DNA from: Monocercomonoides exilis PA203
Taxonomy: Eukaryota; Protista; Preaxostyla
Assembly: GCA_001643675.2 (NCBI GenBank)
Contig: LSRY02000043.1
Span: 805,232-869,231, forward strand
DNA length: 64,000 nucleotides
Reading direction: 5' to 3'
How positions within the stretch are numbered: the first letter of the stretch is position 1; each line of letters begins with the position of its first letter. The position numbers and the translations under genes were made by a program. Shown here in pieces: positions 1,708 through 60,771 of the stretch. The notes under the pieces are model-generated. The model had not been told where the DNA came from. It ran no database searches and worked only from the letters and a program-made list of their open reading frames with translations.

Positions 1708-1873
1708 TTGACCTATTTTCTTTCGTAAGAAGTTTTCAGGAAATAATATAAATTAAAATAATTTTCAGTTTTTTTAATTAATCAATCAAAATTCAAAAAC
1801 AATATAAACATTACCATTTTATTTGGTGTTTTTTAATTTTTTTATAATTTTTGATAATTAATGATTGTTATGA

Positions 1874-3070: not shown

Positions 3071-3544
3071 GTTATAAAAACTTTTGTCTGGAAAATAATA
3101 ATTATAATAATAATTAATTAATTAAATAAATAAAACTGAAACAAAATAATACAAATGAAATTGAAAACATGAAAAAACTATATCAAAAGCTTTGGACAAA
3201 TTTTATTGTTAGCATATGAAATATCTGTCTTTTTCACTTTTGTCAGTGACTATCACTTACGGTCAATGTCATATTTTGACAAAAAAAACCTCAACTGACA
3301 TTTCCTGTCAAAAAAATATATGCAAAGAACTTAATAATATTTATTAAAAATTCTGTTTTTTCAAAATAATAAGAATTGGTACATTTAGATTATCATATTT
3401 GTAATGATAGTTATTTTCGAATTATGAAAAAGTTATAAATAACGATTTTTGACAAATCAATAATAACTTATCAGTAATTTTGTCATTGTATCAATTTTCT
3501 TTTGTCACGTCACAAAGGCATATTTTTTTGAAGTGAAGAAAAAA

Positions 3545-26750: not shown

Positions 26751-26943
26751 TTTATCAACCTTTTGAGGCGAGGGAAGGAGTGTCATAAAAATTGATCTTA
26801 TTCCATATAAAAATGAATTTTTTTTCATAATGCATTAAGTTTTTCTTTCTAGAGATTTGTTTTATCAATAAGTATGAATTTATCCTATAACAATTAATTT
26901 GTCAATTAATACATTAAGGTTAAGATCTAACACATTGCAAAAA

Positions 26944-27864
26944 ATGTTTTTCGTATTGTTTTCTTTGTGTGTTGCCCACGAATGGGACGATATTGTAATG
27001 CAAGTTAATAAACGGTCTGATGTATCTTGGGTTTCTGGTCACAACAAGCGATTTGAGGTAATGAGCAAAGTTCAAATACTCGGATTGATGGGTGCAAAGA
27101 TGCCCCAAGAATCTCCATTAATTCCAGTAATAAATGAAAAAAGAGTTGATCTTCCTTCTGAATATGACTGTCAACAAGAATATCCTCAGTGCACAACTAT
27201 CGATCATGTTTATGATCAAGGATATTGCGGCAGTTGTTGGGCAATGTCAACTTTCGAATCTCTTCAAGACAGATTTTGCATTCACTCAAATGGATCGATG
27301 ACGCCCTTGCTTTCAGCTCAGCATCTTGTTTCATGTGGGCCTTGCAATGGATGTTTCGGAGGATGGCCAACAACTGCGTTTTCTTTTATTCAGAAAAATG
27401 GATTAACCACTGAAGAATGCATTCCATATCAAATGGGAATTTGCCATCATCATCCATGCGATTATTGGAAAACTCCAAAGTGCAACAGAACATGCTATCC
27501 AAATACAAAAGTACCAATTGATAAAGAAAAATATTATGTCAAATCTCAAGCACGCATCGGTTCAAATGAAGAATCAATTAGAACTGAAATCATGAACAAT
27601 GGTCCCGTTACAGGAGTTTTCACAGTTTATGAAGATTTTATGACATATAAATCTGGAGTATACCATCATGTATCTGGAAAGCAACTTGGACTTCATGCGA
27701 TAAAAATTGTTGGATGGGGAGAAGAAAATGGAGAAAAATACTGGAAAGTTGTTAATTCTTGGAATACAGATTTTGGGATGGAAGGGGTATTTTTCATTAA
27801 AAGAGGAAGAAATGAATGCGGTATTGAATCGAATATTGTATCTGGAATGCCACGTATTAACTAA
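26944..27864 (+). CDS. Cathepsin B-like cysteine peptidase (papain family C1A), intronless
   Basis: Signal peptide MFFVLFSLCVA, propeptide, catalytic QGYCGSCWA, GLHAIKIVGWG, NSWN and a C-terminal GRNECGIE. Confidence 0.97.
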   Translation: MFFVLFSLCVAHEWDDIVMQVNKRSDVSWVSGHNKRFEVMSKVQILGLMGAKMPQESPLIPVINEKRVDLPSEYDCQQEYPQCTTIDHVYDQGYCGSCWAMSTFESLQDRFCIHSNGSMTPLLSAQHLVSCGPCNGCFGGWPTTAFSFIQKNGLTTEECIPYQMGICHHHPCDYWKTPKCNRTCYPNTKVPIDKEKYYVKSQARIGSNEESIRTEIMNNGPVTGVFTVYEDFMTYKSGVYHHVSGKQLGLHAIKIVGWGEENGEKYWKVVNSWNTDFGMEGVFFIKRGRNECGIESNIVSGMPRIN

Positions 27865-28199
27865 GAATAAATTAATTGAATAGAATGAATAGTTCTATTT
27901 GAGGACATGACCCATTTTAGGAGAAATATTTTTATTTTGCTGTATTTTTAATAACCTTGATATCTTTTAATATTAATTTCATAAAGTTTAATAATAGTAT
28001 TTTTTTTTATAAATTTTAGAATATTATTTCATTCGATATTTGAATTAATATGTTTTTTTTTAAAGTGAAAATTGTATTAAAGTTGGTGAACACTTTTTCA
28101 AAATGAAAGCAGAATTGAAAATGATCAAACTGATTAATTGATAAACAGTATTGTGAGGATTTGCGATAAAATATTCAAAGTTAATTGGTGAAATACAAC

Positions 28200-28515
28200 A
28201 ATTTCAAAAAAAACACGAGAACAAAAACTTCGAGGCGTTAAACTAACATTTGAAGTGAGAAACGCCAATTCATTATTCGGAAAAATATTTGCTGCTCTTG
28301 ATGCTTTTCCACAGAAGGTTTGTTTGATATCAGAAGCGTTAAACATTACGACCAAAATAATTAATAGCGCTGTCAGATGTTATTTCTCCTGACAAACTTG
28401 GAACGAAAAGGAAATTCATGCAAGGATTTGTTTTCTGAATTTCGAGGGTGAAGAAAATGTACTGAATATTGTTCATGAAAAATATAAACAACATGATGGA
28501 ATAACAACACAAGAA
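28200..28515 (+). pseudogene. Probable 5' part (HTH region) of the pogo/DDE_1-like transposase split by the Merlin insertion
   Basis: The frame EGEENVLNIVHEKYKQHDGITTQE continues as LSYL across the TSD at 35390 when the element is removed. It loosely resembles the N-terminal region of the DDE_1 remnant at 46519-46818. Confidence 0.45.
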
Positions 28516-28705
28516 GGCATAGGTGTAAATTGTACCACTTTCAGTTTGAATTTTTTCAAAATTTGAATATCATAGCGTTAATCTGCATAATTTAACTAAG
28601 CGATTCAAGGAGGGAAATTGCGAAATTCGATCATAAAAATTCACTCGATTTTTATGATTGATCAAAAATCCCATAATTTATTTTTTCATTTTTGATCAAA
28701 AACAT
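28516..28705 (+). repeat. Left terminal inverted repeat of the Merlin element
   Basis: Reverse complement of 35200-35389. Confidence 0.95.
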
Positions 28706-28757
28706 AATTAAATAATAAAATTTGAACTTTTAAAATTTTTGAATACTCATCAAATCC

Positions 28758-30299
28758 ATGCAAGAGGAATCAGAAAAGAGCAAATTTCCAACATTTACAC
28801 AGTTTTTAATTAATTCATCAGGGAGCGACGAGTATTCCCTTTCACTGTTTGAAGAATATGGCATTTTGAACAAAAATATTAAATGTCATAAGTGCGGTGT
28901 CAACATGTTACTTAAAAAATGGAGAAATGTTAAAAGCAATTACTCATTTCGATGCATGAGATGCAAAAAGGAATATTTTTGGAATTACAAAACAATATTT
29001 AATGGACACAAAATATCACCATTTTCTACAATGTGCTTGTTGTACCATTACTGGTATCGGCATGAGATAAATGAAACGATAAAAGAAACAAATTTATCAA
29101 ATAAAACAATAATAAAATTCAATCAATTGATGAGAAGAATTTGTGCCTATTTTGAACTGAATTGCTCAGACAAAATAGGCATCAACAAAACAATAGAAAT
29201 GGACGAAACTCTTATTTCAAAAAGCAAAAATAATGTGGGAAGAGTGAAGGAACAACAATGGCTTTGGGGTGCAATAGAAAGAAAAACAGAAGGACAGAAA
29301 CAGAAACTCAAACTTGAATTTCTTCCAAATAGAAATGAACAGTCACTTTTGAAATTTATTGAAAGAAACATAGACAAACCAGCAACTGTTAATTCAGACA
29401 TGTGGTCTGCTTACAACATTATAGAAAAAAAAGGTTACAAACTTCAAAGTGTAAACCACTCAACAAGCTTTGTGAATAAAATAAACAGAAAAATTCACAC
29501 TCAAACTATTGAATGTATGTGGTCGCATGTGAAAGCTCACATACCAAGAAGAGGAAGAACATATCAAATAAAAAAAGAATACATATATGCATATGTTTAT
29601 AGGTTCAATAATTCGAATGATCTTCGGAAAATGATGAGTGACCTCTCCAAAATCAACACAAAAGAATTACAGGCGTTCATATACACATATGAGAAGTGTG
29701 AAGGCAGAATATCTTCACTCTTAAAGGAAGAAAAAGACAAAGGAAAAGAATTATATGAAAAGAAAAAGGAAATAACGCAAAAAGAGGAAATACCAATCGA
29801 AATGTTCGATGCATCTAATTTAGAAATGATATGCAAAAAACAAAAGCGCAAAAGAATTGATGAAACTGACGAAAAAAGTGAAACAACGGATGACGATTCA
29901 AGTTATGATCCAACAAATGCATCCAACCTTGAAAACTTTTGCGACAACGATGATGATGAAGATGATGAAGAGGAGAAAGATGAGGAGGAGGAGGAGGATG
30001 ATGATGAGAAAAAGGAAGACGAAGAAGAAGATGATGATAATGATGAAGATAATTCTCTCAGAAAGAAACGAAAAAGAAAATACTCAACAAAGCAATTATC
30101 TCTTTCGAACATTGAGACACATGGAATTCACATGTGCAAAGAAAACACAGAATTCTATATTGAGCAACGATTGAAAACAATGAAACAAAAATATGAAAGA
30201 AAATTGAGACAATTGAGACAGTTGACTCAAAGGCGAATGCTTCGAAGCTTGCTGAAGTCAAAAAGCTTTGGCACAACAACAAAACCGATAACATTGTAA
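28758..30299 (+). CDS. Intact Merlin/ISXO2-like DDE transposase, 513 aa
   Basis: CHKC...CMRC Zn ribbon, IEMDET (D), VNSDMWSAY (D), VNHS and HTQTIECMW (E), followed by an acidic tail and basic NLS-like clusters (RKKRKRK). There are no internal stops. Confidence 0.93.
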   Translation: MQEESEKSKFPTFTQFLINSSGSDEYSLSLFEEYGILNKNIKCHKCGVNMLLKKWRNVKSNYSFRCMRCKKEYFWNYKTIFNGHKISPFSTMCLLYHYWYRHEINETIKETNLSNKTIIKFNQLMRRICAYFELNCSDKIGINKTIEMDETLISKSKNNVGRVKEQQWLWGAIERKTEGQKQKLKLEFLPNRNEQSLLKFIERNIDKPATVNSDMWSAYNIIEKKGYKLQSVNHSTSFVNKINRKIHTQTIECMWSHVKAHIPRRGRTYQIKKEYIYAYVYRFNNSNDLRKMMSDLSKINTKELQAFIYTYEKCEGRISSLLKEEKDKGKELYEKKKEITQKEEIPIEMFDASNLEMICKKQKRKRIDETDEKSETTDDDSSYDPTNASNLENFCDNDDDEDDEEEKDEEEEEDDDEKKEDEEEDDDNDEDNSLRKKRKRKYSTKQLSLSNIETHGIHMCKENTEFYIEQRLKTMKQKYERKLRQLRQLTQRRMLRSLLKSKSFGTTTKPITL

Positions 30300-30591
30300 T
30301 TTTCTTTTTCCATTGTTTTCTTATCAAACAACATATATCACATCACTCTGAATAATTAAAAGATTGTTTAACTATATCAATAACATCAAAAACCCTCTTC
30401 CGTTTTAATAATTTGGAAGATAAAAAAACAGTAACGATCAAAGTGAACAATAAAAATCCAGTTGAAATTTCTTTATTCCACTTTTTTTCAAAATTAACTT
30501 CATCTTTTGAGACAGTTTCATTTTTATTCATCACTTCAACAACGTTACTAAAAGAAAAACTGTTTTCATCAAATAACATGCACAATCTTTC

Positions 30592-33500
30592 CTCTTGCTC
30601 AGCATCTTCCATCGCAACAACACATCTTTCTGATGCTACACTCACATTCTCTATCGTCATGATCTTCATCACCACCTTCGCTTTCCCTCCAACACTCACA
30701 ACATCTCCTTCGCAACTGATGCTCAAAATGTTCGTTTCAAGCAGCGTCACATTCGATTCTCTGTTGAATAATAGCACCGATCCTGCTGAATGCAAATCTC
30801 TAAATGCTGAATCAAATATCCTCAGCTCTCCGCTTTCCACACCCACAACCGAACTGTTCAACTTCAGTTTATCAGAAGAAGAGATAAACTCGCATTTATG
30901 GATCTCTGTTGATCCATTCTTCACTTTCATTATGTAGCTGTGAGTCGCCACAAATGTATCTTCAAACTCGAATGAGCATCTCTCCACAGCGCTTTCATTT
31001 ATAAACTCCATGATACAATCCTTCTCAAATGATTTCTCAATCTTGGAGTTCAATCTCACAATCGCCTGTGTCTTTTTCAATGAATTCACAACAAGATCTC
31101 CAATCACGCATTCTTCTGTCACAACTCCTTCTCCTTCAATCAGAATCGCATTCATTACACCTTGCTCAATGTGGTCAACCCCACAGTTGATACTGATGCA
31201 TGGATTGCTTTGAGCTCCACACCTTCTGCCGTCAGTTCCTGTTACGTTCACAAACACTTGAAGCCCATAAAAATAGGTGATTAGCGGAATCAGATCAACA
31301 TCTCCCTCACTCTCAACATCCCTCCCACAGATGGAGTTGTTTGAGTTCAATGATTCCTGGTTGTAGTTCAGCGAGAACAGCGTTTCGTTGATCTGGTCTA
31401 GAATTGAATGGCATTTGATGAATATGTCTTTCCCTGCAAATGCCTCGTTCAGCCTGAACAAGATATTCACAATCTTGAAATTCAGAGATGGAATCTGACT
31501 TTCATCATCAATGTTAACTATTGGATCGGCTCCATCAACAAACAGCCCTCCTCCACGCCCTGATCCAGTTGAGCATTTACACATCGAAAACGAGCTGCCA
31601 TTCACCTTCAAAACTGATTCTTCACTCTTCAGCACCAATTTCATTCCTCCTCCTTCAGTGCTCAAATCGCTCCTGCACGTGGACACTGTGCAGTCCTCGA
31701 TCGTGCAATCTATCGCATTCTCAAACGATCCCAATTCAAAGACGCTTGCACCGCTTCCTTCGTTCTTGATGGTTTCAAACGAACAGTACACAACTTTCAA
31801 CACAGGCTTGTTGCCATTCAAATGAGTGTTTTCATTTCCATTCATCTGGTTTTCCTCTTCTATCATCGAAATCAGGCTGTTTGCTGTCAAAGTGGCTGAT
31901 GAAATGTTCACATTCTGAATCGTCACCTGGCTCACACTTGGGCTGAAAGCAATGAACCCTTTCAATTCGTTGATCTTATTCAACGTGCTGCTCTGAATTG
32001 CTGCGCTCCCTCCATTCACTTTTATCAGGCAACACTCAAAACTTTCAACCGTCCCGCTAGCTGACCCAAATGAGCAGTCCGTGACTGACAAGACTGTATT
32101 TGTTCCTGACGATTCAATGAATACTGCATGATTGGTGGTTATGCTGGGTTTGGTGAATGACACATTGAAGAATGACAGACTCACATTCGACGATATCATT
32201 GCACCACTGCTGTCAGCATTCCCATCTTCATCAGTAATTGTCACGCTTGTCCCTTTCTTTGTTCCTTTTATCACAACAGCTGGCGCTTCTGAATCTGGAG
32301 AAGTTGGTGGCAATGAAGGAGAAAATGATATGGGATGGCTCAGCAACCCTGATCCCACAATGTTGATGTGTGTTTCGCCTTTTTCAAGTGTCGAATATCT
32401 CAGAGAAATTATGTGGTTAATCGATGAACATGGTGCTTCTGAATACACACACCCACTGAAATCTCCTCCTTTCTCTTTCGAGACAAACCCATCCCCACTC
32501 CAGTTATCCCACAAATACACAACCAATGGAATCACATATCCATTTTCTCCTGTTGTCTTCCTTTCCCATCCACACAACTCATCCAATGAATTCTTATCAC
32601 TTGCACTCAACTCCTCTTTCAGTTTTTCGTTTGACATAACCTCGTCCAGCTCATTTCCCGATATGAACGCTTTCTTCCCTTTCCAGGCATCGCATCTCTC
32701 AAATGTCACTCCTTCAAGCACAAATGTTCCCATCTCATTTGCCAGCTTCACAAACATCCCTCCTCCCATTCCTCTCCCTCCTTCCTTTCTATCTTTTATT
32801 GGCTCTTCACATCACGATAATTTCACACTCGTCATATTCAAGCTCCCTCTTTTCCCTGCTGATGTGATCATCCCTCCTCCTTTCATCCCACTTCCACCTG
32901 TGCATGTTGTTGAAATGCTGCAGTTATCCACAACTGCGCTTCCTCCTTCTTTTATCGCTGCACCAATGCAACCTCTTCCTTCTCCGCTCCCGTCTTCCAC
33001 CGTCACTCCACTCACTCTGCTGTTCTTGATGTCCAATTTCTCTCCGTTTGAAATTGTTATTGGCGACACCTTATTCATTGTTACTGTTTTTTCCATCACA
33101 AATCCGTCGAAGGTCAGAGTTCCTCCATCAACGTTCAGTATGTTGTATGTAATCTTTTCGCTGGCTGATCCATCGTCTGCAAACGAGACGGAACAGCTTG
33201 TGATCGTAAGTGTTGACATGGAATAGATAAATGCGTTTCTCCTTGTATTTATTTCGCTGAACATCACAAACAACAAATTATTCATGCTAAATGGCAATTT
33301 GCAATTTACAAGATAATTACCGGTTTAAGATCCAATATCCTTCACGTTAATTCTCATCATTCCGTTTGCTGCTGTTGCTGCCTTCCCTGATATACTCACC
33401 TCAATTGTTTCCACTTTTATTTCATCTGATATTGAAGATTCTGAAACAACTTCGATTTCATGAATGCTACTGTTCACTCTTTTGTTCACGCAATATTCAA

Positions 33501-34955
33501 CTGACTTGCACCCAAAATTCTCTAATCCGCAGTAATTGTGATTTAATGAGCCTTCTTTGTTCCCATCAACAGTCAACTTTGATATGACTGATTGCAAGTA
33601 TATAAACAGCGGAATCACTTTCTCTTCGTTCCCATCCTCGCTCCCGCACAACTTCAGCACATCTGTTGGCATTTCGCTTGAATCAAAAAACCCAAATGTT
33701 GTTGCATCTACTTTTGTTTCCAGCAATATTCCCGAACCGCAACTGACAAACACATCCTTTCCGTATTTAGCTTTGTTTGCCGTATCGACCGAAAACTTTA
33801 CTCCTGATGCAATCTCCAACTTGCTTTTCGAGCTCAGCATCTCCAGCATTATTCCTCCGCCTCTCCCTTCAGCATCTTCCCCTTTGTATGCCTCGCATCC
33901 ATCGAACTCGCTCGTCCCATTCACCACAACGCTTCCTTCTCCTTTCACACTCATGCATATTCCTCCTCCTTTTCCGTCTTTTCCGTCTTTTCTCCGGCAT
34001 TTGCAGTTCTTCATTACGCATGATTCAATCACAACAATTCCTATCGGTCCTTCCCCAAAGTCTTCTCCAACTGCTCCTTCCAGGAACCCCCCATTTCCAC
34101 TTTTCTTTTCAATAGAGTTAATAATGCAATCTTTGAAGTGCACAACATTCACCCCTGATTCAACCTTGACCAACGAGTGATCTCCAAATGGCAATGTTTT
34201 TTCAATGACTAACTGCACCACATTGAGTTTCCCTAAAATCGCTTTTACAAAACTGTATGCAAAAAATGTACCAGAAGGAATCAGTGCAAAATTGGTGATC
34301 GAGCAGCTTGTGAGTGTGAGGCATGTGGAGTTGGCCAAAATCAGCGATGTCACGTCTGCAAGCTCTGTTGGCAGTGAAAAGGTTATATTTTCTATTTTGC
34401 ATGTGCTCTGCGCATTGATCAGCCAATCAGAACATATGGAACTCGGGCGAATCACTTTCACATTCATCCCCTTTGTGGCGCAAGAGATCAGCCATTCTTT
34501 GTCAACATCTGTCATGGACACCTCTTCGGCAAGCTCGAATTCTGGACCTAACTCTATTTTTTTATTTCCCCCTGAAAATCGCGCCTGAGCAGTGTGGGTG
34601 ATGGTGGCACACGGATAATAATCAAATCCACAGAACCACGAGTCATATCTCCCCAGAACACCATCTTTCTTTTTGCCCACATGTGCTGCACCAGTATGTG
34701 AGTCCAGAAACACATTTAGCGGGAATTGCTTCATGGTTGTGTCATCTGTGTCATATCCCACCAGTTCATTTAATGATAATATGCTCTGAATACCTTTCAG
34801 CTTTTCTGTTGTTATTCCCCAATTCTTTGAATCACCCCCATTCACTAATACATTATTTCCCCCTGATTTCGCGGTGCAGCCTGTAAAGTCCACAGACACG
34901 ATCGAGAAGTCGTGCGGACCATCTTCCAGATTCACCATTATCCCGCCACCATTTC
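30592..34955 (-). pseudogene. Captured internal fragment of a beta-helix receptor-family gene (transposon cargo)
   Basis: ORFs 33325-34938, 32812-33297 and 30343-32769 share one frame broken only by TAA (33325-33327) and TGA (32812-32814). They contain CGxxxxPC modules, GGG/GKD motifs and IPL motifs like the gene at 48390-60771. There is no signal peptide, native TM or kinase. The segment is visibly more GC-rich than the rest of the element. Confidence 0.85.
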
Positions 34956-35199
34956 AACATCAATAGTAATTGAAACAAAATATATGTTCCTATTGCGAAA
35001 AAATTAATTTTTGCCCTGCGTTTTTTGTCAACATGAAAAACATGAAATCCTCTCCTTATAATAATGATCTGCATCGCAACATAGATCTCTTTGTTGTATT
35101 AATATCATGTATATTGATTTCAACATAACATGCGTTTCCACAAACTATATTTATAAGAATATGCAAATTTTGATATTCTCGGAAATTTAAATATAAATA

Positions 35200-35389
35200 A
35201 TGTTTTTGATCAAAAATGAAAAAATAAATTATGAGATTTTTGATCAATCATAAAAATCGAGTGAATTTTTATGATCGAATTTCGCAATTTCCCTCCTTGA
35301 ATCGCTTAGTTAAATTATGCAGATTAACGCTATGATATTCAAATTTTGAAAAAATTCAAACTGAAAGTGGTACAATTTACACCTATGCC
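35200..35389 (-). repeat. Right terminal inverted repeat of the Merlin element
   Basis: Ends ...TTTACACCTATGCC and is followed by the TSD CACAAGAA. Confidence 0.95.
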
Positions 35390-36531
35390 CACAAGAATTA
35401 AGTTATCTCATTTTTTCTTAAATGCAAAGGCAAAATTTGAAATCATTAAGGATGTCTCTTCACTTTGGACTTAGTCCTGTAATCAAACATTTCGATATAT
35501 AGCTTGTACCACCTTCTCCAGCACATGTGTCCAGATTCATTTCGAAGTCCAAGCTGAAAGTGCTCTCTCCTTTTAATATTACTCCAGCGAAATTGAACTC
35601 AGCATTCATGTCAAACGTCAAAGCATGGTTCAATTTTATGTTCAACAAAGATATCAAGCCATCTGTCAACAAGCTGAATTCATTGACGCAGACAAATAGA
35701 ATGCTGATTTTTGTTCTTTCCAAAAAATAATCGTGCCAGCCGAAGCCAAAAGAGCACCTGCTTCCACAGAAGATCACTCAAATAATCATTTATCAATAAT
35801 GACCACCATTAGACCCTCTTGAATTGCACCTCCACCAATCTTCATTGTTTTTGCCTAGAAAATTGTTTCTCCTGAACTTTTGAAATTCAGAAAAGTGGGC
35901 TCATGTGAAATCCACGTCAATGCATCAGAAAGAACGAACAGAAATGTTTTCTGCTGTTATGCTGTTCATTTCTGCTCATGAATAACAATATGAAGGTTCC
36001 TTGGAAAAATTCAACACAATTCTCATGTTTTTTAACAAACTTGATGGTCATCCATCTCGTCTTTGTTCTTCAGCGTTGGTTTTATTTGAACAATATTAAA
36101 TTTTCGTGTTCACTCTTTCTGGAAATTTGACTCACATAACGCAACATTTTGATGTTGGAATCGCTTGTCCTCTTCGAAACGCATTCAGAAAGCTGATGAG
36201 GAGAAGAAAAATTAAATGGGTGGACGAGCACAATGATGGACAAAAAATGAAAGCCGCTGACAGAAGAAAAATAATCGTTGAGTGTGCAATCGATGCAGAA
36301 AAGACGGCAACATCATTACTGAACAAGGAGAGCGCATTCAGGACAACCGGATTGTTCCCAATCAATCCAGAAATCTTGGTTTCAAATCCGTATGTTTCTG
36401 ATGATACAGAAGACCCTAAGTATCCAGAAGGGATTAGGACAGGAGAATTTGAAGTTCCTTTTAAATGGTTAACAAGTCAAAGTTTTATTTTTTCACTTCA
36501 AAAAAGAGAAATGGAAAAAAGAAAAAAATAA
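35390..36531 (+). pseudogene. pogo/Tigger-like (DDE_1) transposase remnant, 3' part
   Basis: LDGHPSR (~36040-36060) and NLTHITQHFDVGIACPLR match the DDE_1 motifs DGHxSH and T-x-x-x-QPxDVG. The upstream part is broken by stops. Confidence 0.75.
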
Positions 36532-40674: not shown

Positions 40675-43389
40675 ATGTCATCTCTTGAACAGCGATATCC
40701 ATTGCAAAGTGACGAAATTGTTCGAAAGAGCCTCAATGAGGCTGAATCAAACAAAACTTTGAAAAATGAATATGTAAAATCATCTCAAAACTCTTTTGCA
40801 AAACATTCTTCATTACTGGATTCGTTACAGAGCAGAAAAGGCCCACTTCAATTTGTTCGGATGAAGCAAGGAGTTTTAATTAATGAAGGAATTAATGAAG
40901 CTAAATCTCAAGAACATGCGGAAACCGCAATTGAAAGAAGGAAACAAAAAAAGGAGGAACAACAAGAAAATGAGAAAAGCGATAATGATGGCGATAAAGA
41001 GGAAAGAAAAGAGGAAAGAAATTTAGATAATGAAGAAAAAGAGGAAAAAGAGGAAAAAGAGGAAAAAGAGGAAAAAGAGGAAAAGGAAGAAAAGGAAGAA
41101 AACTCATTTCCCAGCTTTCCGTCTTCCTCATCTTCTTCCTCATCTTCCCAATCACTGTTGAATGAGAAAGAAGAAATTGATACAAATACTTTAAATGAAG
41201 AATCACCAAGAAAAAAGAGCTCTCGGTCAAGTGCAGCAGGCATGTTTAAGGGATTGCTTCCATCTGCTTTCAAAAAAGTTTGCAGGCCATCGGCTTCTGC
41301 GGCTCAATCTGCTATTCCAGGCAGACAGATGGAATTATGTTCTAAACAGGTAAAATTTAGGCTGAAAGCAAAGGAAGGAAAGAAGCTAATGCGAGTCGAA
41401 CACATTGGGTTCAATGCAACGAAAGAGCAAGAGCGGGAAATTAGGGAAGCGGATAACTTTTTCCAGAGAGGTTTTGTCAAAAAGCAAGTTGAGGTACTCA
41501 AAGATATATCAAAAAAGAAAAGGCTTAGAAAGGCAACTGCTTCGGAAAAAGAAAAGCGCGAGGAAATTCAGTCCGATGACGAAGACGATGAAATGGCCGA
41601 TTCTGATTTAGATGAGTTATACGACGAAATCCAAGTTTCTGAGCCAAAAATCCTATCTCGATCTCATGTTGCTCCTCAAGCTAAGCAACCAATTATTCCG
41701 CACCCGAAGGCAGCTCCGGTAGTTGAAAAAATTCGAGGAATGCCATTTCCAAAGGAATTTATTTATCAAGCGGATCCATCTGCTTCTTTGTTTACAGAAC
41801 AGCCAGAAAAGGAATTTGAAAAATCATTCGATTATCGAGTTGCGGAATTTCGTGTGGCGTTGGATCGATATCTCAATCGAGACACAGGTGCTCTTAGCTT
41901 ACAGTTATTGATGGAAAAGGAGCAATTGGCAGAGGAAGAAAGAAAAATATTCGCAATCAAAAAGGCAGACAACGAAAAAGACGATGCTGCTTCTTCTTCT
42001 TCAACTCCGTCAACCGAAGTTGCAGAATTTGATGGAGAACCAGCATCAATTAGAGAACCTGAAAAAAGAAAAGAGGATAAAATCCCAAAGGATGATTTAT
42101 CGAAAGGATTAAAGATTGCAACGACAGCTAGTCGATCACCCCCTTCAAGAATTAGGACTGTCTGTAGAGTGCCGGGCAATGCAATTAAAATAAAACCAAA
42201 ATTACCTCGGCCAAAGCCCAAAGGGCATTTAATTGGGCATCAAGTTCGTTTGCCTCCTCCACAACAAGGAAGAGCTAACTTAACAAAGCAACAGATTATG
42301 CGCATTACGGTGAAACGGGGACTTTACTTTGTACAGTCATCTTTTGATCAATTCATGCAAAGTGACCCAAACATGTATAAAAGAGAATTATATGTTTCTT
42401 TTGAGAAGGAACCAGCTGTTGACATTGGTGGCGTTCGAAGAGAATGGTTTTCTCTAATATTACCAGCAATAACAAATCCAGATTATGGCTTGTTTGCAAC
42501 TGATGTTTCCAATGGCAATAGAATCTATCTATCTCATCTTGCATCAACAGCGCAGGATTATCCAAAACAGTTCTATGAATTTGTTGGATATTTGATGGGG
42601 AAGGCTCTGATGGAAGGAATTACGATACCTGCACACTTTTCCAGTTTTTTGTTTAAGACTCTTTTGAATGAAATTCCTCATATTTCTGATGTTGCATCAG
42701 TGGATCCTGAATTAGCGCTTCAACTTGCACAGATGGAGACTGAAGATGTGACAGATTATAATATTCCATTTTCTTTGAATGTGGAAATATTCGACAAAAT
42801 CCACGAAGTTAATTTAATTGAAAATGGATGCAACATCGAAGTGACCAACGAGAATAAGAAGGATTTTATTGCATTATGCGCTCATCACAGACTTTTTGGC
42901 GGAGTCGCATCACATCTTGAGGCTCTAACTTCTGCTTTTCATAAAGTGATTCCTGCGCGTCTGATTGCAGGACGCTTCACTCCGGAAGAATTGGAATCAA
43001 TGATCTGTGGGCAGGCTGTAATTGATGTCGATGAATGGGAAAAGAACACAATTTATTCAGAGGGATTCACAAAAGAATCGCAAACTGTGAAATGGTTCTG
43101 GGAAACAATCCGCGAAATGAAAGAAATAGGCAAGCAACTTGTTTTATTTTACGTAACAGGATCACGCACACCTCCAGCTCTTGGATTTGAGTATCTTGTC
43201 GGAGCACAGTCTAATATGCTAAAAAAATTTGAATTAAGAAAGCTGAAAGATTTATCTTCAGAACATTTACCAGTCTCCCACACTTGCTTCAACCAGTTAG
43301 ACATGCCAGAGTATGAATCGAAAATTCAGCTACGCGAAAAATTGCTGCTCTCTCTATCGACAGTTAATGAAGGGTTTACAATGGGCTAA
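40675..43389 (+). CDS. HECT-domain E3 ubiquitin ligase
   Basis: EPAVDIGGVRREWF, FTPEELESMICG, VKWFWE, YVTGSR and catalytic LPVSHTCFNQLDMPEY, ending EGFTMG. The true start may lie slightly upstream. Confidence 0.95.
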   Translation: MSSLEQRYPLQSDEIVRKSLNEAESNKTLKNEYVKSSQNSFAKHSSLLDSLQSRKGPLQFVRMKQGVLINEGINEAKSQEHAETAIERRKQKKEEQQENEKSDNDGDKEERKEERNLDNEEKEEKEEKEEKEEKEEKEEKEENSFPSFPSSSSSSSSSQSLLNEKEEIDTNTLNEESPRKKSSRSSAAGMFKGLLPSAFKKVCRPSASAAQSAIPGRQMELCSKQVKFRLKAKEGKKLMRVEHIGFNATKEQEREIREADNFFQRGFVKKQVEVLKDISKKKRLRKATASEKEKREEIQSDDEDDEMADSDLDELYDEIQVSEPKILSRSHVAPQAKQPIIPHPKAAPVVEKIRGMPFPKEFIYQADPSASLFTEQPEKEFEKSFDYRVAEFRVALDRYLNRDTGALSLQLLMEKEQLAEEERKIFAIKKADNEKDDAASSSSTPSTEVAEFDGEPASIREPEKRKEDKIPKDDLSKGLKIATTASRSPPSRIRTVCRVPGNAIKIKPKLPRPKPKGHLIGHQVRLPPPQQGRANLTKQQIMRITVKRGLYFVQSSFDQFMQSDPNMYKRELYVSFEKEPAVDIGGVRREWFSLILPAITNPDYGLFATDVSNGNRIYLSHLASTAQDYPKQFYEFVGYLMGKALMEGITIPAHFSSFLFKTLLNEIPHISDVASVDPELALQLAQMETEDVTDYNIPFSLNVEIFDKIHEVNLIENGCNIEVTNENKKDFIALCAHHRLFGGVASHLEALTSAFHKVIPARLIAGRFTPEELESMICGQAVIDVDEWEKNTIYSEGFTKESQTVKWFWETIREMKEIGKQLVLFYVTGSRTPPALGFEYLVGAQSNMLKKFELRKLKDLSSEHLPVSHTCFNQLDMPEYESKIQLREKLLLSLSTVNEGFTMG

Positions 43390-48389: not shown

Positions 48390-51300
48390 ATGCTCGACAA
48401 GTGCTTGCTGATATCTGCATTCATTTCCATATCCTTTCAATTAGCCGCCAACACAAGAATTGAATATCTTTCAAAAAGTGCCAGCAAGAGGGTTGTTTCC
48501 TTTGGCCTTGACGAGATGGATAATGGACCGATTTCAGTAGGAAGAAGTGCTCCGTCCATTGCAGTTGATGAAGATGCAAATTTGAAACACGAAAACGAAA
48601 TTGCGGAAAAGAACTTCACAAAGCCGGTGTCTTCGACCATCGACACATTCATTGAAATGCACAACAGCACTTTTTGTGCCTCAAAAGTCACCTTCTTTCC
48701 CACAGGAAGACAGTGTCAGATAGTGACATCTTGTTCGTCTCTTTTTCTGAAGCAGGTTTCTATGTCATTTGGGGCAAAGGCGATTTCCAGATTTTGTGAA
48801 GCAGAAGGCGGAAGGATAGAGATCTGCAATTTGAGTTTGCTGTTCCGAACACAAAACCGTTCGATTTCATCGCTTGTTGAGTGGAAAGAAAGTGCAGAGG
48901 GCGAAATTGGCTGTGGCAAAGCCTTTTGTCAGACACTTCGTTTTCGTGCTTGTCGACTCCACCCTTCTTGTCTGTGTTTGGTTCGCTGTCTCTTTTGCAC
49001 ATGTCGATGGAAAACGTGGTGTTTATGAATGTGTCAACAAACATTGCACACAGCAGCACCACTGCTTTCTCAGAAGCAAACCATCTCCAGAAATCTCTTG
49101 TCTCCAGCATCTTGCTGGTTGACTGTGACCAATCACTGTTGAGTGTTGATGAGAGTGCAACGAGGCTCGCAAAGTTAGTCGTGTTCAACTCTTCGTTTCT
49201 CAGATCGCATGACATTCAAAAGGATCAATGCTTCAACACTTCACTGCCTTCGTTTTCGAGTGGACAAATAGAGTTCGACAGTTGCAGATTTGAATCATGC
49301 ACATCAGCGACACGGAATGGAGGCGCACTAAATGTTGGTGGGAGTGCTTCTCTGACACTCAGAAGTTGCACTTTCACAAATTGCTCAATAACTTATTGTG
49401 GAGAAAATATGCCAAGAGGAGGTGCTGTTTACACATTCACAAGAGCGAATTGCACTGTTTTAAACACTTTGTTTTATGGGTGCTCATGCAATTGTTCATC
49501 AGTTCAACCTTTTGGAGGAGCTTTGGCTGTTTTCAATGCTTTCACATTTTTGGAAACAATGCGAGTTCAAAAATTGCTTTTCTCGCACATGTGGAGCATT
49601 TAACATTGAACAGCATAAAAAATTGGAACTTATTGACTGCTTGTTCGACAAAAATGAAGCAATTGTATCAAGAGGTTCTTTTCATTTATACAATGGAACA
49701 TTCAATGATTCTATAACCAACAGTTTGATCAAAGATTCAAAAGTGGAAAACGGTTTTGCCGGAGCACTCAGTTTTGAGTTTTATACAAATAAAATGATCT
49801 TTATAAAATATTGCCTATTTGATAATAACATATCCCCAACAAATGAAGGGAATGATATCCATTTTAGAGCAAATAATACAGTTAATGCAACCAAAGAGTG
49901 GATAATATATTCATATTCGACATCAAGTCAGACCGGGAGAGTGTATTGCAACGGAGACAAAGCAGGGTGGCTCCCAGATGTGCCTGCAGTGTACGATCCT
50001 CTGAGAGTCGACTCAGCTGGGGGAAGCGATGATGCAGGATGCGGGAAGAATGGAGCAGAGTGCAGGACAATCGCGTTTGCGGTGACACAGTGGGTGAGCC
50101 ACAGACACACAGGGGTTGTGGTGTGCAGCGAGGTGAGTGTGGAGAAGGCTGTGAGCATCTCCGGGCTGGAGATTTGCATAAGCAAAGATGCAACAATGGA
50201 ACATGGAACGATTCGGTCGGATGTGGAAAGCGGCTCGCTGTTCAGTGTGGGTAGCGGGAAGCTGGAGTTGGAGGGGTGGACAGTGATTCATGATACAGGA
50301 AATTCGAGGGGTTCGTCTCTGTTTGCAGTGGATGGGTATGAGGGTTTGGCGCATGTAAAGAATTGCACGATACAAGCGGACTCTGTGGATTTGTCGTTTC
50401 ACGAGCCGCTTTTTGTGGCAGGGAGGGGAAAGATTGCTATCGAGGACTGCCAAGTGGAGAATGTGTGTCTGGAAGGGTGCAGTCTGCTGATGTGGAGTGC
50501 TGAAGGAAGTGTTTGTGTTCGAGGCGGGAATATAACTCAGATAACGAGAAGAAATGGAAACGGGGGAGTGGCAGAGAAGGCGTTGGAGGCAGGAGAGATG
50601 TTTGAGTTTGGGAATGTGACGATGACCGGGTGCAGGTGCAGTGCGGGGGATGGCGGAGCGATTTGGGTGGAGATGGTTGGAGGAAGCTGTGCGAGAATAG
50701 GATCAGAAAGTTCAGTCACAGGGATGAAGCAATGCTGGGCAGAACGGAGTGGGGAAGGAGGTTTTGCTGGAGAGAGCAGAGGTGGAGGGATATGTTTGGT
50801 GCTGAAGGATGGAGGCGAAGACTTCTGTGTGGCTCGCCCGTTGTTTGAGGAGAACAATGCGGATTGGGGGCGAAATGTGTTTGTCAAATCTCCGGACCTC
50901 AAGAAAAGCACTGTTCAAGCACATTTTCCGTTCTATCCAGAGTATTTCTCGGAGCAAGAGATGCAGGGAGAAGATGGAAGAACACCGAATATTGGAATCC
51001 CGCTGGTGTATTTCCTGCAGCTGCGAGAAGCGCGAGTGAGTGTGGGAGACGGGGAGTGGATGTGAGTGCATGTGGATTTGCAAAGTATCAGTGCAAGACG
51101 ATGGACTATGCATTTGGGCAGCAGGAAGGGATGCATCTGGTGCTGTACAACAAGAGCTACACATGGAGAGAGTGCCTGGTGCTTGATGGAGCAGAGGGAT
51201 ATGACTTGAGCGGGAAAGAAGGGATGTCGGAGGTGAGGATGGTTGGGAACGAGAGTGGGCTGTACGAGATGGTGAAGGTGGGGAGCAGTGTGCAGATATC

Positions 51301-54300
51301 ACTTGTGGCATTTGCCTTGGAGCCTGAACTGAAACAGTCGCAGACTTGTGTGTTTGCAGTCGAAGGGGAAGGGAATGGTGCGCTGACGCTCTCTTCATCG
51401 CGGGTGAGCGGCGATGCGGATGTGCTGTCTGTCCCGTTCTGTTTTGTGTGTGTGAGAAAGGGGAAGATGCTGATGAGCAGTGTTGTTGTGGAGCATTTGT
51501 GCTTTTTGGTGGAGCCGTTTGTGAGGTGCAGCGGAACGGAGTCTGAAACGGTGATGATGCAGGCAACGTTCGCTGACACGACAAGCTGGGGAGAAGAAGG
51601 GTTGATTGTGCTTCGCGATGGCTCCACGGCAAAAATCAGCAAGAGTGCGTTTGAAAGCAGCAGCGGAAGCAAGCAGCCGATGATTGTTGTGAACAAAGCC
51701 AGGAAGACCAATGTGAGCGAGACAAGCGTAGACTGCTCTCTTTCTGGTCAAGGAGATGGGTGTTTCCTTCGCGGAACGCTGGGAGTGGGGTGCGAAATGG
51801 TTGTAGATGGAGGAAACATGAGTGGGACATGCCCAAGAGGAAACGGGGGAATGCTGAGACTGGTGCTGGAAGGCGGAAGCAAGCTGCAGATTGGAAGAAG
51901 CATGGAGACGATTGTGAGCAAGTGCAAAGCAGTTTTTGCAGCAGGGAGTGGGGATATGGAGGAGGGATGTATTTGGAGACAAATAGCAGTGACGTGAATA
52001 TGGGGCTGAATGCAGTGAAGTTTGATGGATGTCAAGCAGACAGGCATGGACACAATCTGTTTTTAACAGCCCCCAACTTCACAGCTTCTGTGACAAAAGC
52101 CACACTCGGATTTGTGGCTGACACCACAAATGAAGAGGAGCTTGAGGGATATGAAGGAGGAAACAGCACATATGCAATCCCGTTGGTGCTGTATCTGCGT
52201 GACGACCCTGAGCCAGTTATGGTTGGTGGAGATAACAAAAAGATTTCGACAGATGTGGATATGCTGGACACGGGTGCGAAACGATGGACTTTGTGATGGC
52301 TCGGTGGGTGGAGGAAAACGGACTCAACGCATCAATATCAAACACTGTGCCGCTATACTCGGAGGCAAGTCTTGTCAGCGGAGTATTTGTGCTGAACGGC
52401 ACATCAGTATATTCTCAAATAGACGTGTTCGAAAATGCTGCAAAGAAACAGGATGGGATGATAGAGACAAGCTGTGCGACAACATTTACGGGACTGAAGA
52501 TTACTGGGCCAGCGAGCTTGAACACGAGGTTTTATCTAATATGCACGAAAAGTGGAGTCTTGACATTGAGCTCGTGCGCTCTGAGTGTACGCTCGTCACT
52601 CACAGCTGCATATTCCATGATCGCCTGCACAGGAGGGCAGACAACGTTGAATGATGTGACCATCAGGAATGCTGTGTGTGCGTGTGGAGCCATGATTTGG
52701 ATCACAGGAGAAGGAAGCTGCACCATGGATGAATGCACAATGATGAATGCAAAGGGTTCGGAAGCAACAGATGGATGCGTTGTCTATGCATCATCTGGCA
52801 CTCTGGAAATAGGAAACACGACATTTTCAGAGGAAGGGGCAGATGACAGATCAGGCAGCGTGAGGCTGGCAGATAAGCTGGGAAAGTGGATGGGAGTGAG
52901 GAACTGCACGTTCAGAGGCTTGTCAAGGAACGGAGAAAAAGGATGTGTGCTGTTTGGGATGTTGGATGAAGGGATGGTGCTTGAGCTGAACGATGTGAAC
53001 ATGGAGAACTGCACTGTGAGTGGAGGAAGCGGAGGAGGATGCTTTGTGGAGTTGTCGAAGACAGCAAGACTTCGTGTCGGAGAGAGTGGGAATAGAATGC
53101 TGGCTGAAGGATGCCGAGCGCTGGCTGGCGAATGTGGCGGATTGAAGGGATTTGGAGGAGGAATGCTGGTGAAGTGCATTGAAGAGGCAAGTGATATGAT
53201 AATTGCGGGGTGAAATTTGGAGAAGGGGAAAAAGCGAACATGGCTGACAAGGGAGGAAACAATGTGTTTGTTTCGTGTGTGAATTTATCAATGGTGGTGA
53301 ATGAAGGCTCGTTCAACTTTGACTTTATGAAGAAAGTTGAAGAGTCGCCCAGGCTGTGGGATTTGATGGGGATGGAAAATGGAGCAAGAGAGAATCCGAT
53401 TCCGCTTGTTGTGTTCTTTCGAGAAAGCGCAGGGAATGTGTTTGTTGGAGACAAAGGGTGCGATTATGTATTATGCGGGTTTGAGGATTATCCGTGCAGA
53501 GGAATTGTGCATGCTGCAGCACTGCGAAAAGGATCGGAAAACGTGGTGGTTACGCTTCTTGCAGACTTTGGGTTTTGCGATTCCATAATTCTGGATGCTC
53601 AAGAAATGACCATCAACACCCAAGGCAACAGCCACGAAAGAATGGTCCATGGAGAAGGAGAAGGAGAATCCGACTGGTTGATAGAGACCAAAAAGAACAT
53701 CACTTTTGAAGATGTCTCATTTGGGATGCCGCCTTCATTTAACTACCAACGTGAAAGCTTTCTGAGGTGCAGCAAAGACAAACTGGAGCTCAGAAGGTGT
53801 TTGGCGAAGGTTGAGGCAGACTCAAGGAGGATTGATTATTCATTTGTTAGTGTGGAAGGAGGGATGCTTGTGATGGATGATTTTTCAGCGATGGAGTTGT
53901 GTGCTGTGCAACATGGGCTTGTGGATGGAAGAGGGCTGGACTCAAAAGTGGAGCTAAGTGGGGTGAAGTTTGAGGGTATTTCTGTGGAAGGAGAAAGAGG
54001 AGTTGTGTGTGGGCAAAGCTGTGGATTGCTCAGCATGAATGATTCTTGGATGAATTCGTCTGCTCTTGGAGACAGCTGCTTGGTGTGGTTTTGCGGGTGC
54101 GCATCCGTTAACATGAAAGGGCTGAGCATCTGGAACGTGTCGAGAACAGCAGGGAGTGGAGGGGCATTCAGTGGAGAAATAGGAGAAGGGTGCAAGTGCG
54201 AGATCCGAGGGAGCACATTTGGCAATGTGAGTTGTGGGGAGCATGCTGGAAGGGGAGGGTGCGGAGCTGTGGAGGTGATGAGAAATGGGAAGCTGATTAT

Positions 54301-57300
54301 TGAGGGGTGCGTTTTTGAAAAGAATGGGGTGGATGAAGAAGCAGGGTTTGGGGGAGGGTTGTTTGCTCGGTTTGTGGATGTGAGTGTAAAGTACAGCATG
54401 AAGCACAACACATTTGCAGAGAACAAAGCAAGCGTGGGGAAAGATGTGTATGTGATTTGCCCGCAGGCGAGAAAGATGCTGTATCAGGAGTTGTGGGAAG
54501 GAACAGTCGAAGAGGATGATGAAAAAGAGCGGTTTTGGGTTTATGATGAGAGTTCTGGAGTGGTAATCAACACTTCGATATTAGTTATGCTTTTTCCGGC
54601 AGGCGAGGAGATTGTATTTGTTGATGGAACAGTGATAAATTCAGAGGGGTGTGGGCACGAAGAAACACCATGTGGCGATGTGTTGCATGGGTTCAAAGCA
54701 ATGAACGAAAATCAGACCACAATAAGGATTGTGTCGGGCACATTTTTGGGATCAGTTATTGATCGAGACTCATCGCTCGCAATTGAAGGGGCAAAGGCAA
54801 TTCACCCAGAGCTGGAGATAAAACAAAGCGGGCAGCTATGTGTGTCTCATGAAAACATATCCCTTTCGCTTCGAGGCTTGACTTTCAGATTTGCAACAGA
54901 ACTTTCGCCAGCATTAACTTCTTCACAATTATCTTCGGTATCTTCTTTTGAGTTGAATTCTGTCTTTGCTATCAGCTGCGGACGATGCGCAGTGACAGAT
55001 TGTGCATTTGGAAGAGGAGGCGAAGGAGGAGATGAAGACCAATCAGAGGTGACAAGATGGCTGGTATATGAAACCGGAGGTGCAGTTGAGATGAGTTCTG
55101 TTCAGTTTGAAAGTGTTGATTTTTGCAATGAATGTGGGATTGGACTTTGCCTTGGTGGAGAAATGGTTTGCCAAAACGTCACAATTTCCCACATTGCAAC
55201 AGATGGCCCGAATATGTTTGAAAGCAGAGGCAATGCTCGGGTGGAATTCAGCATGATGAACGTGAGCCATGCAAGAGCAGAGAAAGGACGATTTGTCACT
55301 GTGAAGGAAGGGTCGAGCTTGATGATGGGCGAGGAGTGTGCGCTTGAGGGTTGTGGGCGAAGTTCAGTGAATGGGAGTTTTGCTTGCTGCGAAATGAGCA
55401 AGGAAGCAGAGCTGAAGATAGAATCTGGGGCAATGAGCCATTGGGCATGCGACAATGAGAAAGGTTATGGAGGATGCCTGTTCGTCAAGCTGTGTGCCGG
55501 GTTTGGTGGAGATTTTTACTTCAAAAATATTCAGTTGAGTGAGAATGATGCCTTTGAGGGGAAGGACATGTTTGTGGAATGTGTAGAACTAAATGCATCG
55601 GTGACACAAGAAAGGTTCAGGTTTGAGCTGGCAAGTGGGAGCGACGGGAAGGCTGCTGATCTGAAGGGTATTGATGCAACGCGCTTTCCCTCTCCAGTGG
55701 ATTTGAGGCTGTTTCTTATTCAGGCGCACTGCATGCAGGCTGTTGTGTCCAGCGAAGGGTATGACACTTTGGGCTGCGGGGTGCTGATGCATCCCTGCCA
55801 GTCATTTTGGAGAGGCTATTGCAACACGCAGGCAGACGCAGATCCAAAGGAGCTGGCAATACAGGAGGGTGCAACAGTCAGTCGCGGATACGATATGTCT
55901 TCATTTGTTGTTGCTTCGTTGCCAGCAGAAGAATACAGCAAACTGCACATTTCACATGACATCCAGGATGGGATATCTGGTGCAGTGTTTTGGAATGCCA
56001 AGGCGCTGTTGTTCCGCACAATCAAATTCTCATTTCCCCCAACAGCATCATCTGCCGTTCGTTCGATGATTGCTTCGTCGTCTGCAAGCTCTTTGCTGTC
56101 GATTATCAACTGCTCCATATCCAAAGCGAGTGGCGCTGCAGTTCAATATGTGGCTGTATCAGTCACAGGGGCGAGCTTGTTATTGAAAGCAGTTCGTACA
56201 CATCGTCTGGCGAGTATGCTTCTGCTCCCTTTTCTGTTCGTGGCACAATGTGTGCGATAAACAGCTCATTCAGCACGGCTCAAACGAGATCAAGCAAGGA
56301 AGGAGGGCTGATGCAAATCAAAACGAGTGGCGGTGATTCGGTAAAGATGGAGGGATGCACACTGGAAGGGTGTGCATGCACTGAAGAGAATGGGAAAGGG
56401 GGCGCTTTGTATGTTGATGGGAAAGAAGCCGTTCAGTCTAATTGTTTGCTGCTGAAAAGTGTCAATTTTGCAGCGAATCACGCACAAATCGGGGAGCACA
56501 TGTTTGTTGCGTGTAAAGACCTGAATGCCACAGTGACAAAGTCGAGCTTCATGTTTTCGTTGGATTTTGTCAAGGAAGATGACAATGGGCTGATGGGAAG
56601 CGATGCAGTGCATAATGAAACAACGCTTCTGAGGTTTCTTGTGCAGTACAAAGGAAGCACAGTGCACATTGCTCGAGCCGGGTATGACTTGTTGCGATGT
56701 GGAGGAGCAGAGGATCCGTGCAGGAGCTGGACTCACGGGGTGAAGCAATTTGAGTCAGAGTCCCCCACAAAAATAGTTGTGATCGATGGAGGCTGCAACT
56801 ACAAGGAGAATGGGGTGCTTTCGGATTATGAAGTGAAGTCGATTGGGGAGGAAGAAGAGGAGCAATCAAGAGCTGAGCTTTGCGTCGTGCAGGGCGATGA
56901 CGAACAACATGACGTGTGCATGCGAAATGCAGGGGTGCTTTGTTTTGAAAAGATCTCGTTTGTTGTGGCAGAGGGGTTTTCAAACGAGGAAAACGGGGTG
57001 ATTGTCAGCGAAGATGGGAACTTGAGGTTGACGAGCTGCGAGGCTTGGATGAACGGCAGAGCTTTGCTGGAAAATAGCGCTTCATTTGTCGTTGTGCTGA
57101 GAGGGGCTGTGCTGCTGGAAGGAATGACAGTGAGCCGCTCATCGTTTGGAAGAAGTTTGATGGAAATAGCGTCTCATGTGGATTGTGTGTTGGATTCTGT
57201 CAGTGCAGAATTGATAAATGTTGAAGAAGGATGCATAATTAGCATGAGAGATGACGACTCTGAGCAAATGAACAGCAAAAACGCTGGAGCAGGGATTTCA

Positions 57301-60300: not shown

Positions 60301-60771
60301 GTGAAGAGCGAGAGATTCTCAAAATCACCACCACCTTCGTCGGCCTTTGAGGATGAGGATGACAACCGGAAAGAGTGTCTGCGGTGGAAGGCGCCAGAGC
60401 TGCTGATGAACAAAGATCTGGGAGCCACAAAGAAGACAGTTGTGTTCTCGATTGGGATGATGCTGTGGGAGAGTCTGACGCTGGAGATCCCGTTTGGCGA
60501 GTATGAAGCAGAGGTGGCGGGGATGTGGCTGAAAGAAGGAAAGCGGCCGAAGACGGGAGGACTGGAAGGGAGCAGGCTGGAAGGGCTGGTGAAAGGGTGC
60601 TTTTCGCAAGAGGCGAGGGACAGGTGCACTCTGACAGATGTGAAGCGGGTGCTAATTGGGCTGTTCCCGGCCGGGACAGTCATGCTCACAGTGACCGATG
60701 CGATTGGGCTGGAGGAAGAATCAGGAAGCTACAGGAAATACAGCAGGTTCAGTGGGGAAGGAAGCAACTGA
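48390..60771 (+). CDS. Giant (~4,100 aa) single-pass receptor-like protein: signal peptide, repeated Cys/Gly-rich beta-helix modules, TM, kinase-like C-terminus; fragmented by ~11 single-base frameshifts
   Basis: Ten overlapping ORFs continue one another. The protein has an N-terminal hydrophobic leader, about 8 CGxxxxxC modules, a TM segment WPVIVCIAVVVILLITLIIFIVRWRK, and kinase C-lobe motifs RWKAPE and VFSIGMMLWESLTLEIPF. Confidence 0.8.

Follow-up and report, generated by a model that had tools for sequence, protein, structure and literature searches.

A Merlin transposon of Monocercomonoides exilis that combines an intact transposase with a mosaic fragment of a host receptor gene

Merlin transposons are defined by terminal inverted repeats (TIRs) of 24–462 bp with a terminal 5'-GG, by target site duplications (TSDs) of 8 or 9 bp and by a single DDE_Tnp_IS1595 transposase, and the genome of Monocercomonoides exilis holds more than 100 copies from at least seven families, with 8-bp TSDs (Lopes et al. 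2021, PMC8101967). Here we describe a 6.9-kb Merlin, a cut-and-paste DNA transposon, from a 64,000-nucleotide stretch of M. exilis DNA (contig LSRY02000043.1, positions 805,232 to 869,231; the window). Between its TIRs it carries, antisense and downstream of the transposase gene, a 4.4-kb piece of a host receptor-kinase gene (the cargo). The element resembles the Merlins of Lopes et al. (PMC8101967) in its 5'-GG TIRs, 8-bp TSD and DDE_Tnp_IS1595 transposase, and it resides in the same genome. It differs from them in its length and cargo and in its TIRs of 190 bp, whereas theirs are mostly 23–29 bp long with unclear inner borders. A text search of PMC8101967 gave no mention of captured host sequence, and literature searches of incomplete coverage returned no report of cargo-carrying eukaryotic Merlins.

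Host gene fragments that lie between TIRs and are copied with the element are known from the Pack-MULEs and other Pack-TYPE elements of plants and from the Pack-TIRs of animals, and their capture is currently modelled as gap filling or template switching (PMC8277862, PMC8903248, PMC6431247). Such elements are typically non-autonomous and mostly 1–2 kb long, and often they are single-copy and have an identifiable parent (PMC8277862, PMC8903248, PMC6431247); the animal ones are mainly hAT and TcMariner elements, and the word Merlin is absent from PMC8277862. The window element shares with them the enclosed host fragment and its amplification by transposition. In contrast to them, it has an intact transposase beside the cargo, the cargo is fixed across clades, and neither a single parent nor an unambiguous parental copy in the sense of PMC8277862 is found. 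The element works like a multicopy Pack-TIR, yet its autonomous make-up and the lack of a single parent place it outside the definition of Pack-TYPE. The bacterial IS1595 transporter insertion sequences (tIS) belong to the same transposase family and likewise hold passenger DNA inside inverted repeats beside the transposase (10.1101/2021.05.26.445724). However, tIS are prokaryotic and carry intact passenger genes, whereas the host here is a eukaryote and the passenger is a broken, antisense internal fragment of a native host family. We consider it probable that the window element represents an autonomous-type Merlin lineage that captured an antisense receptor fragment downstream of its transposase long ago, and that the cargo has been overwritten patchwise ever since.

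We searched the M. exilis assembly (82.3 Mb, 101 contigs) for relatives of the element and of its cargo. Each search scored the best 33–84 candidates, so that all counts are lower bounds, and the host paralogues compared are a partial set; an acidic simple repeat at about 29940–30060 was excluded from the later genome and homologue searches. Copies and host genes are named by their contig (C1, C7, C74 and so on), and extracted loci are numbered L001–L046.

The left TIR (28516–28705, + strand) begins with GGCATAGG, and the right TIR (35200–35389, − strand) pairs with it over 190 nt with one mismatch at 28671 and a loose extension to 207 nt. Both the length and the terminal 5'-GG fit the Merlin range. 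The 8-mer CACAAGAA flanks the element on both sides (28508–28515 and 35390–35397, + strand), and the surrounding sequence is part of a repeat with more than 20 genome copies. Since paralogues of this repeat on C33, C38 and C10 cross the site uninterrupted, with a single CACAAGAA each, the 8-mer is a true TSD and the insertion is real; a paralogous site on C69 has a variant 8-mer, and the match on C12 starts just left of the insertion site. The unit between the TIRs thus entered another repeat as a whole and produced an 8-bp TSD. This target repeat (27900–28507 and 35398–36530 of the window) is decayed; fragments of it are reminiscent of a pogo-like DDE transposase, and a Pfam search of the flanking repeat gave no match.

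The transposase gene (28758–30299, + strand) is a stop-free open reading frame (ORF) of 513 amino acids. It matches PF12762 (DDE_Tnp_IS1595) with an E-value of 4e-15, which passes the gathering cut-off, and the DDE triad D149/D214/E252 is kept in an alignment with relatives. The N-terminus contains two CxxC motifs (C43/C46 and C66/C69) with weak zinc-ribbon matches and no match to Zn_Tnp_IS1595, a domain that usually goes undetected in eukaryotic Merlins; the C-terminal tail is acidic and basic. By all defining features tested, the element is classified as a Merlin. The initial annotation, made from the window alone, had proposed a Merlin/IS1595 element with 190-bp TIRs of about one mismatch, an exact 8-bp TSD and an uninterrupted DDE transposase, and each of these features holds (TIR identity 189/190).

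The cargo (30591–34955, − strand, 4,365 bp) matches more than 30 loci at 70–86% identity with the same ends. Four host genes extend beyond both junctions, and the cargo corresponds to residues 259–1688 of a host frame that runs without a stop for at least 1,966 amino acids (62% identity), in agreement with its earlier description as an antisense internal receptor piece of about 4.36 kb. We had also considered the cargo as a mobile unit of its own, given its identical ends at many loci, and this is ruled out by the host genes that run past both ends. The cargo forms a single frame of about 1,455 codons without a frameshift and with two in-frame stops (33325–33327 and 32812–32814), both private to the window and absent from all other copies. 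Its G+C content is 43%, versus 25–32% in the rest of the element. It has no signal peptide, membrane anchor or kinase, whereas full receptor genes continue to a membrane helix and a Tyr/Ser/Thr kinase; the continuation on C21 contains a membrane segment and a PF07714 match (E 9e-5). The possibility that the cargo is a short but complete gene whose tail anchors the product in the membrane was likewise considered and is ruled out, as the frame of the tail is not conserved in other copies.

A Pfam search of the cargo ORFs gave no match. A structure model of 537 cargo residues is all-beta (mean predicted local distance difference test score 58, core 70–95), and its top Foldseek matches are beta-helix lyases and tailspikes, the best with an E-value of 1e-3. 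With moderate confidence, the source of the cargo is predicted to have a right-handed beta-helix ectodomain. Homologue searches with transposase and cargo, within query-length limits, found named M. exilis proteins and no close relative outside M. exilis. In this organism, tyrosine-kinase-like genes are the largest gene family (PMC6759080). At least three annotated genes (MONOS_13063, MONOS_18138 and MONOS_6434) map 100% onto Merlin cargo. The window contains two further, broken members of the cargo's receptor-kinase family (6860–9330, − strand, and about 50200–60720, + strand), as had been noted from the start; these are real relatives, but since they are only 22–27% identical to the cargo protein, they are not its donors.

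The long TIR is found in six paired copies (the window, C74, C7, C27, C37 and C45) and at two solo ends (C21 and C36). All six paired copies carry the cargo at the same place (C45 has only the cargo ends), as does one solo right end, and the genome TIR search found no empty copy of about 2.5 kb with the subfamily TIRs. The copies are dispersed, with unrelated flanks. Of the two outcomes by which the initial annotation would have been refuted, a lack of cargo in all other copies is thus not seen, and misassembly is very unlikely because five other copies have the same junction. Within the subfamily only the window element and C74 keep a TSD, each its own. Swapping TSDs among the solo ends C21 and C36 and the TSD-less copies gave no match; 8-bp TSDs also occur at C74, C68, C80, C25, C36 and L032. 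Backbone identity between the window and C74, its sister copy, is 97–99%, and no near-identical copy is present. Synonymous divergence (dS) between the two is 0.045 in the transposase and 0.041 in the cargo tract 33202–34470. Because these values are equal and each copy has its own TSD, the cargo must have travelled with the element. As far as sequences go, this establishes the cargo as a fixed part of the subfamily that moved with it, in agreement with the earlier proposal of mobile cargo.

The spacer between transposase and cargo (30300–30590) is AT-rich and confined to the six paired copies. Its cargo-proximal 150–190 nt or so show weak similarity to the host continuation (z 1–4.5 versus shuffles) and probably represent decayed receptor sequence; weak similarity in 150–190 bp of AT-rich sequence is what would be expected of an edge left unrefreshed. 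Past the other junction, the AT-rich subterminal segment (34956–35199) is without detectable similarity to host sequence.

The window contains the only unbroken transposase of the subfamily. On the C74 branch, 7 of the 11 transposase changes are synonymous (P 0.001), which indicates an active lineage that carried cargo and was still being selected for transposition once the two copies had split. The window branch has nine private changes, six non-synonymous and three synonymous, which look neutral and are compatible with drift since insertion. The window copy could be functional and is a predicted transposase source, with no sign of extreme youth or activity. TIR identity is no marker of age, because the dead copies C7 and C27 have arms that are 100% identical within each copy, yet differ between copies.

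The cargo is a mosaic of 200–500-bp patches nearest to different host genes. In 30991–31390 (− strand) it is 92–97% identical to a host gene at C1:1.862 Mb, with a 109-bp identical run (31245–31353), versus 72–87% to C74; this C1-type patch is present in three C1 genes. Over 30950–31400 the window is nearest to C1 (94%) and C74 to C14 (93%), each being closer to a host gene than to its sister. In contrast, 32866–34490 (− strand) is common to the window and C74 at 94–99%. The intact host gene C42 matches both at 93–99% over 33700–34100 and 34300–34500, and no other scored locus exceeds 78% in the 1.2-kb tract. We had entertained the idea that the tract at 33.2–34.4 kb evolved stop-free inside the element; the C42-like host patches within it weaken this. 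The adjoining patch (34500–34950, − strand) is common to the window and C7 at 93–97%, and C74 has a C42-like version instead, most clearly in 34500–34800.

Segment trees agree with this patchwork: the nearest neighbour of the window is the C1 host gene, C74 plus C69, C74 or C7, with 98–100% support. Informative sites are clustered, with 0 of 2000 permutations as extreme in five triplets. Whole-cargo dS exceeds transposase dS five- to seven-fold: it is 0.286 against 0.045 for C74, 0.73 against 0.10 for C7 and 0.83 against 0.16 for C27. Beyond the cargo region, the host genes themselves are mosaics of one another (P<0.01 in 17 of 30 triplets), which makes the cargo a further member of a recombining pool. 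We infer that exchange occurs by ectopic gene conversion or templated repair, and the exchanges that can be polarised run from host to cargo. A single donor locus for 30592–34955, as sought by the initial annotation, does not exist among the loci compared: the best whole-cargo host match is 81–82%, and each patch has a different donor.

The same receptor region is found in Merlins outside the subfamily. Those on C10, C69 and at C21:186–194 kb, whose transposases are 46–50% identical to that of the window, carry it oriented as in the window and extended by about 150 and 450 bp, and they keep recognisable receptor sequence where the subfamily has its spacer. The C21:186–194 kb element is complete (7.8 kb, 183-bp TIRs, 8-bp TSD). 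As six of six paired copies and these distant Merlins carry the region, the capture is not young; rather, it appears to be old and recurrent. Downstream of 11 more distant transposases, no end of the GGCATAGG type occurs within 1.3 kb. Four of them are followed by the receptor's kinase end, two by a weak beta-helix part (a third such case is 99.9% identical to one of these) and one by the N-terminal part, all antisense. Two pairs of distant Merlins are 99.9–100% identical across contigs, and cargo-bearing Merlins of other subfamilies have therefore been copied recently. An ancestor with a whole receptor gene is not supported by C13, which holds only about 640 C-terminal codons and whose TIRs were not located.

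Several relatives deserve mention in their own right. At 621–1457 the window contains a second Merlin transposase, which is distant (about 33% identity; PF12762, E 7e-22) and ends in an acidic tail. L010 and L012–L020 are transposase-less elements of 3.8–4.8 kb with the outer 126 bp or so of the TIR and the receptor's N-terminal part, the same part that lies beside one of the distant transposases, and C27:195 kb, with an open frame of 643 codons, looks like the autonomous partner of this family. At C16:1370984–1378229, cargo matches are mirrored on both sides of a transposase in a fold-back element. A 612-bp insertion resembling a miniature inverted-repeat transposable element, with inverted ends of about 48 bp, lies inside the spacer of a distant Merlin (L030:2047–2658, C10). 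At L041, L043 and L046, Merlin transposases are followed by more than 1.3 kb that match no receptor probe and possibly represent another cargo.

In the reading we favour, patchwise overwriting of an old capture, the fragment would first have been acquired by template switching or gap repair before the split from the Merlins with 46–50% identical transposases, and the capture edges would later have decayed or been trimmed. Since the cargo is homologous to a very large, self-recombining host family, host genes and other cargos would then have served repeatedly as templates for ectopic gene conversion or repair, by which patches of 200–500 bp were overwritten. The refreshed middle would go on looking like a recent open frame, and decay would show at the edges, which are not renewed. 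The cargo would be a hitch-hiking pseudogene fragment without protein function, and its main effects would be to scatter homologous sequence at which crossovers may rarely take place and to give rise to false gene models. It should be noted that some observations weigh against this reading. Donors match at 92–99%, rarely at 100%, so that most of them are candidate donors and the direction of most exchanges is tentative. The common ancestor of the window and C74 seemingly had a stop-free cargo, and the ratio of non-synonymous to synonymous divergence (dN/dS) in their shared tract is 0.45 (P 0.037), which could also reflect selection on the cargo. Host similarity is weak at the left edge and absent at the right one, and parallel captures of the same region are an alternative to one ancient capture.

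The low dN/dS would also suit a selected passenger that aids the element, for instance as a source of antisense RNA that moderates either the expression of the transposase or silencing by the host, or of a shortened beta-helix protein anchored in the membrane. Receptor segments beside transposases (middle, kinase end, N-terminal part and other beta-helix parts) are all antisense and downstream, none of the 11 distant transposases is empty in the 1.3 kb sampled, and the window frame continues into a hydrophobic stretch followed by basic residues. However, this hydrophobic tail is stopped or out of frame in other copies, cargo stops accumulate at about the rate of dead transposases, and lineages retain different, partly non-overlapping parts; moreover, patches copied from functional genes would give a low dN/dS anyway. 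We regard a selected passenger as improbable. The initial annotation had envisaged a young, possibly still mobile element that contributes to family expansion; in full, this history would be a recent capture from a single donor by a currently mobile element that is a main engine of such expansion. The intact transposase, perfect TSD, near-identical TIRs and nearly open cargo frame fit such a history, yet it is largely refuted and very improbable: no single donor is found, the cargo is common to several transposase clades and older than the subfamily, TIR arms are fully identical even in dead copies, and the nearest sister is 98–99% identical in the backbone with no near-identical copy. The private transposase changes are also compatible with drift. 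Finally, there is a negligible probability that the junctions of Merlin and receptor sequence, or the mosaic, are artefacts of assembly or polishing. The assembly was made from long reads and polished with short reads (PMC8767320), but the same junctions occur in six copies with independent flanks on different contigs, the TSD agrees with the empty sites, and the patches are 92–99%, not 100%, identical to other loci.

The cargo could, conversely, act on host genes. On C21 (L008:2084–9002), a solo right TIR and its cargo run on into the 3' half of a receptor, which includes the membrane helix and the kinase; this fusion, which has stops, is best read as a crossover product. One kilobase of its cargo matches a distant Merlin of this contig, located 35 kb from it, at 94–99% identity, which suggests local exchange. 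The fusion and the unpolarised patch shared with C42 are thin hints at a putative export into host genes. Trypanosomes keep variant surface glycoprotein (VSG) pseudogenes as an archive of silent cassettes that are proven donors. The M. exilis cargos are similar in that they, too, are fragments of pseudogenes from a surface family and belong to a pool whose members swap short stretches; they differ in sitting in transposons and in that their donor role is putative. Cargos might shuffle in both directions or serve as a silent archive, exporting ectodomain patches or crossover halves into functional receptors and thereby diversifying and expanding the family. The 400-bp and 200-bp patches that intact C42 shares with the window and C74, the C21 fusion, and the other receptor parts in other Merlins are in line with this. 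Nevertheless, we consider it unlikely, given that the inferable direction is from host to cargo (the C1-type patch, and C74 towards C42 at 34500–34800), that the C21 fusion has stops and the cargos are fragments, and that host genes recombine among themselves without cargos. A contribution of the element to receptor-family expansion, as suggested earlier, is a conjecture: the element carries a broken middle piece, and the polarisable exchanges run from host to cargo, so that the cargo is for the most part a borrower from the family and not its builder.

Other elements and genes adjoin these loci. The C74 and C7 copies (L001, from 6306; L004, about 1096–5687) contain two unrelated nested 4.6-kb insertions with GGG...CCC ends, an ATAT target duplication, TIRs of about 28 and 420 bp and no Merlin transposase. 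Both hold receptor-family fragments, which shows cargo in a second TIR group too. A nested 3.6-kb element in C37 (L006:1633–5262) has 355-bp TIRs of the GCATAGG type and carries the kinase end of the receptor together with its membrane helix. L008 (C21) contains a hAT transposase at 52–1581, and broken ORFs with a weak DUF5906 match adjoin the truncated left end on C36 (L009:4816–7078), possibly a Polinton- or virus-like relic. Within the window, a papain-family cysteine protease (26899–27864) and a HECT ubiquitin ligase (40675–43389) are ordinary host genes.

With this element, eukaryotic Merlins join the transposons that carry gene fragments, and here the transposase is retained; the window copy is a natural transposase source for testing the subfamily. 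At least three annotated MONOS genes are Merlin cargo, which inflates counts of the receptor family, and transposon cargo accounts for part of the 'unclassified repeats overlapping tyrosine kinases' (PMC8767320). A useless cargo may look young for a very long time through continual overwriting from a large host family. Comparing the cargo with the backbone of one and the same element provides an internal clock for ectopic exchange, with a roughly five- to seven-fold excess of synonymous divergence, and the gene family to which this clock applies is the largest in the first amitochondriate eukaryote. That Merlins form a mobile two-way archive of receptor-ectodomain cassettes, in which autonomous elements retain an antisense receptor fragment as a permanent component, spread it and feed patches or halves back into functional receptors, seems doubtful to us; if they do, the transposon would be part of the machinery by which the receptor family diversifies.

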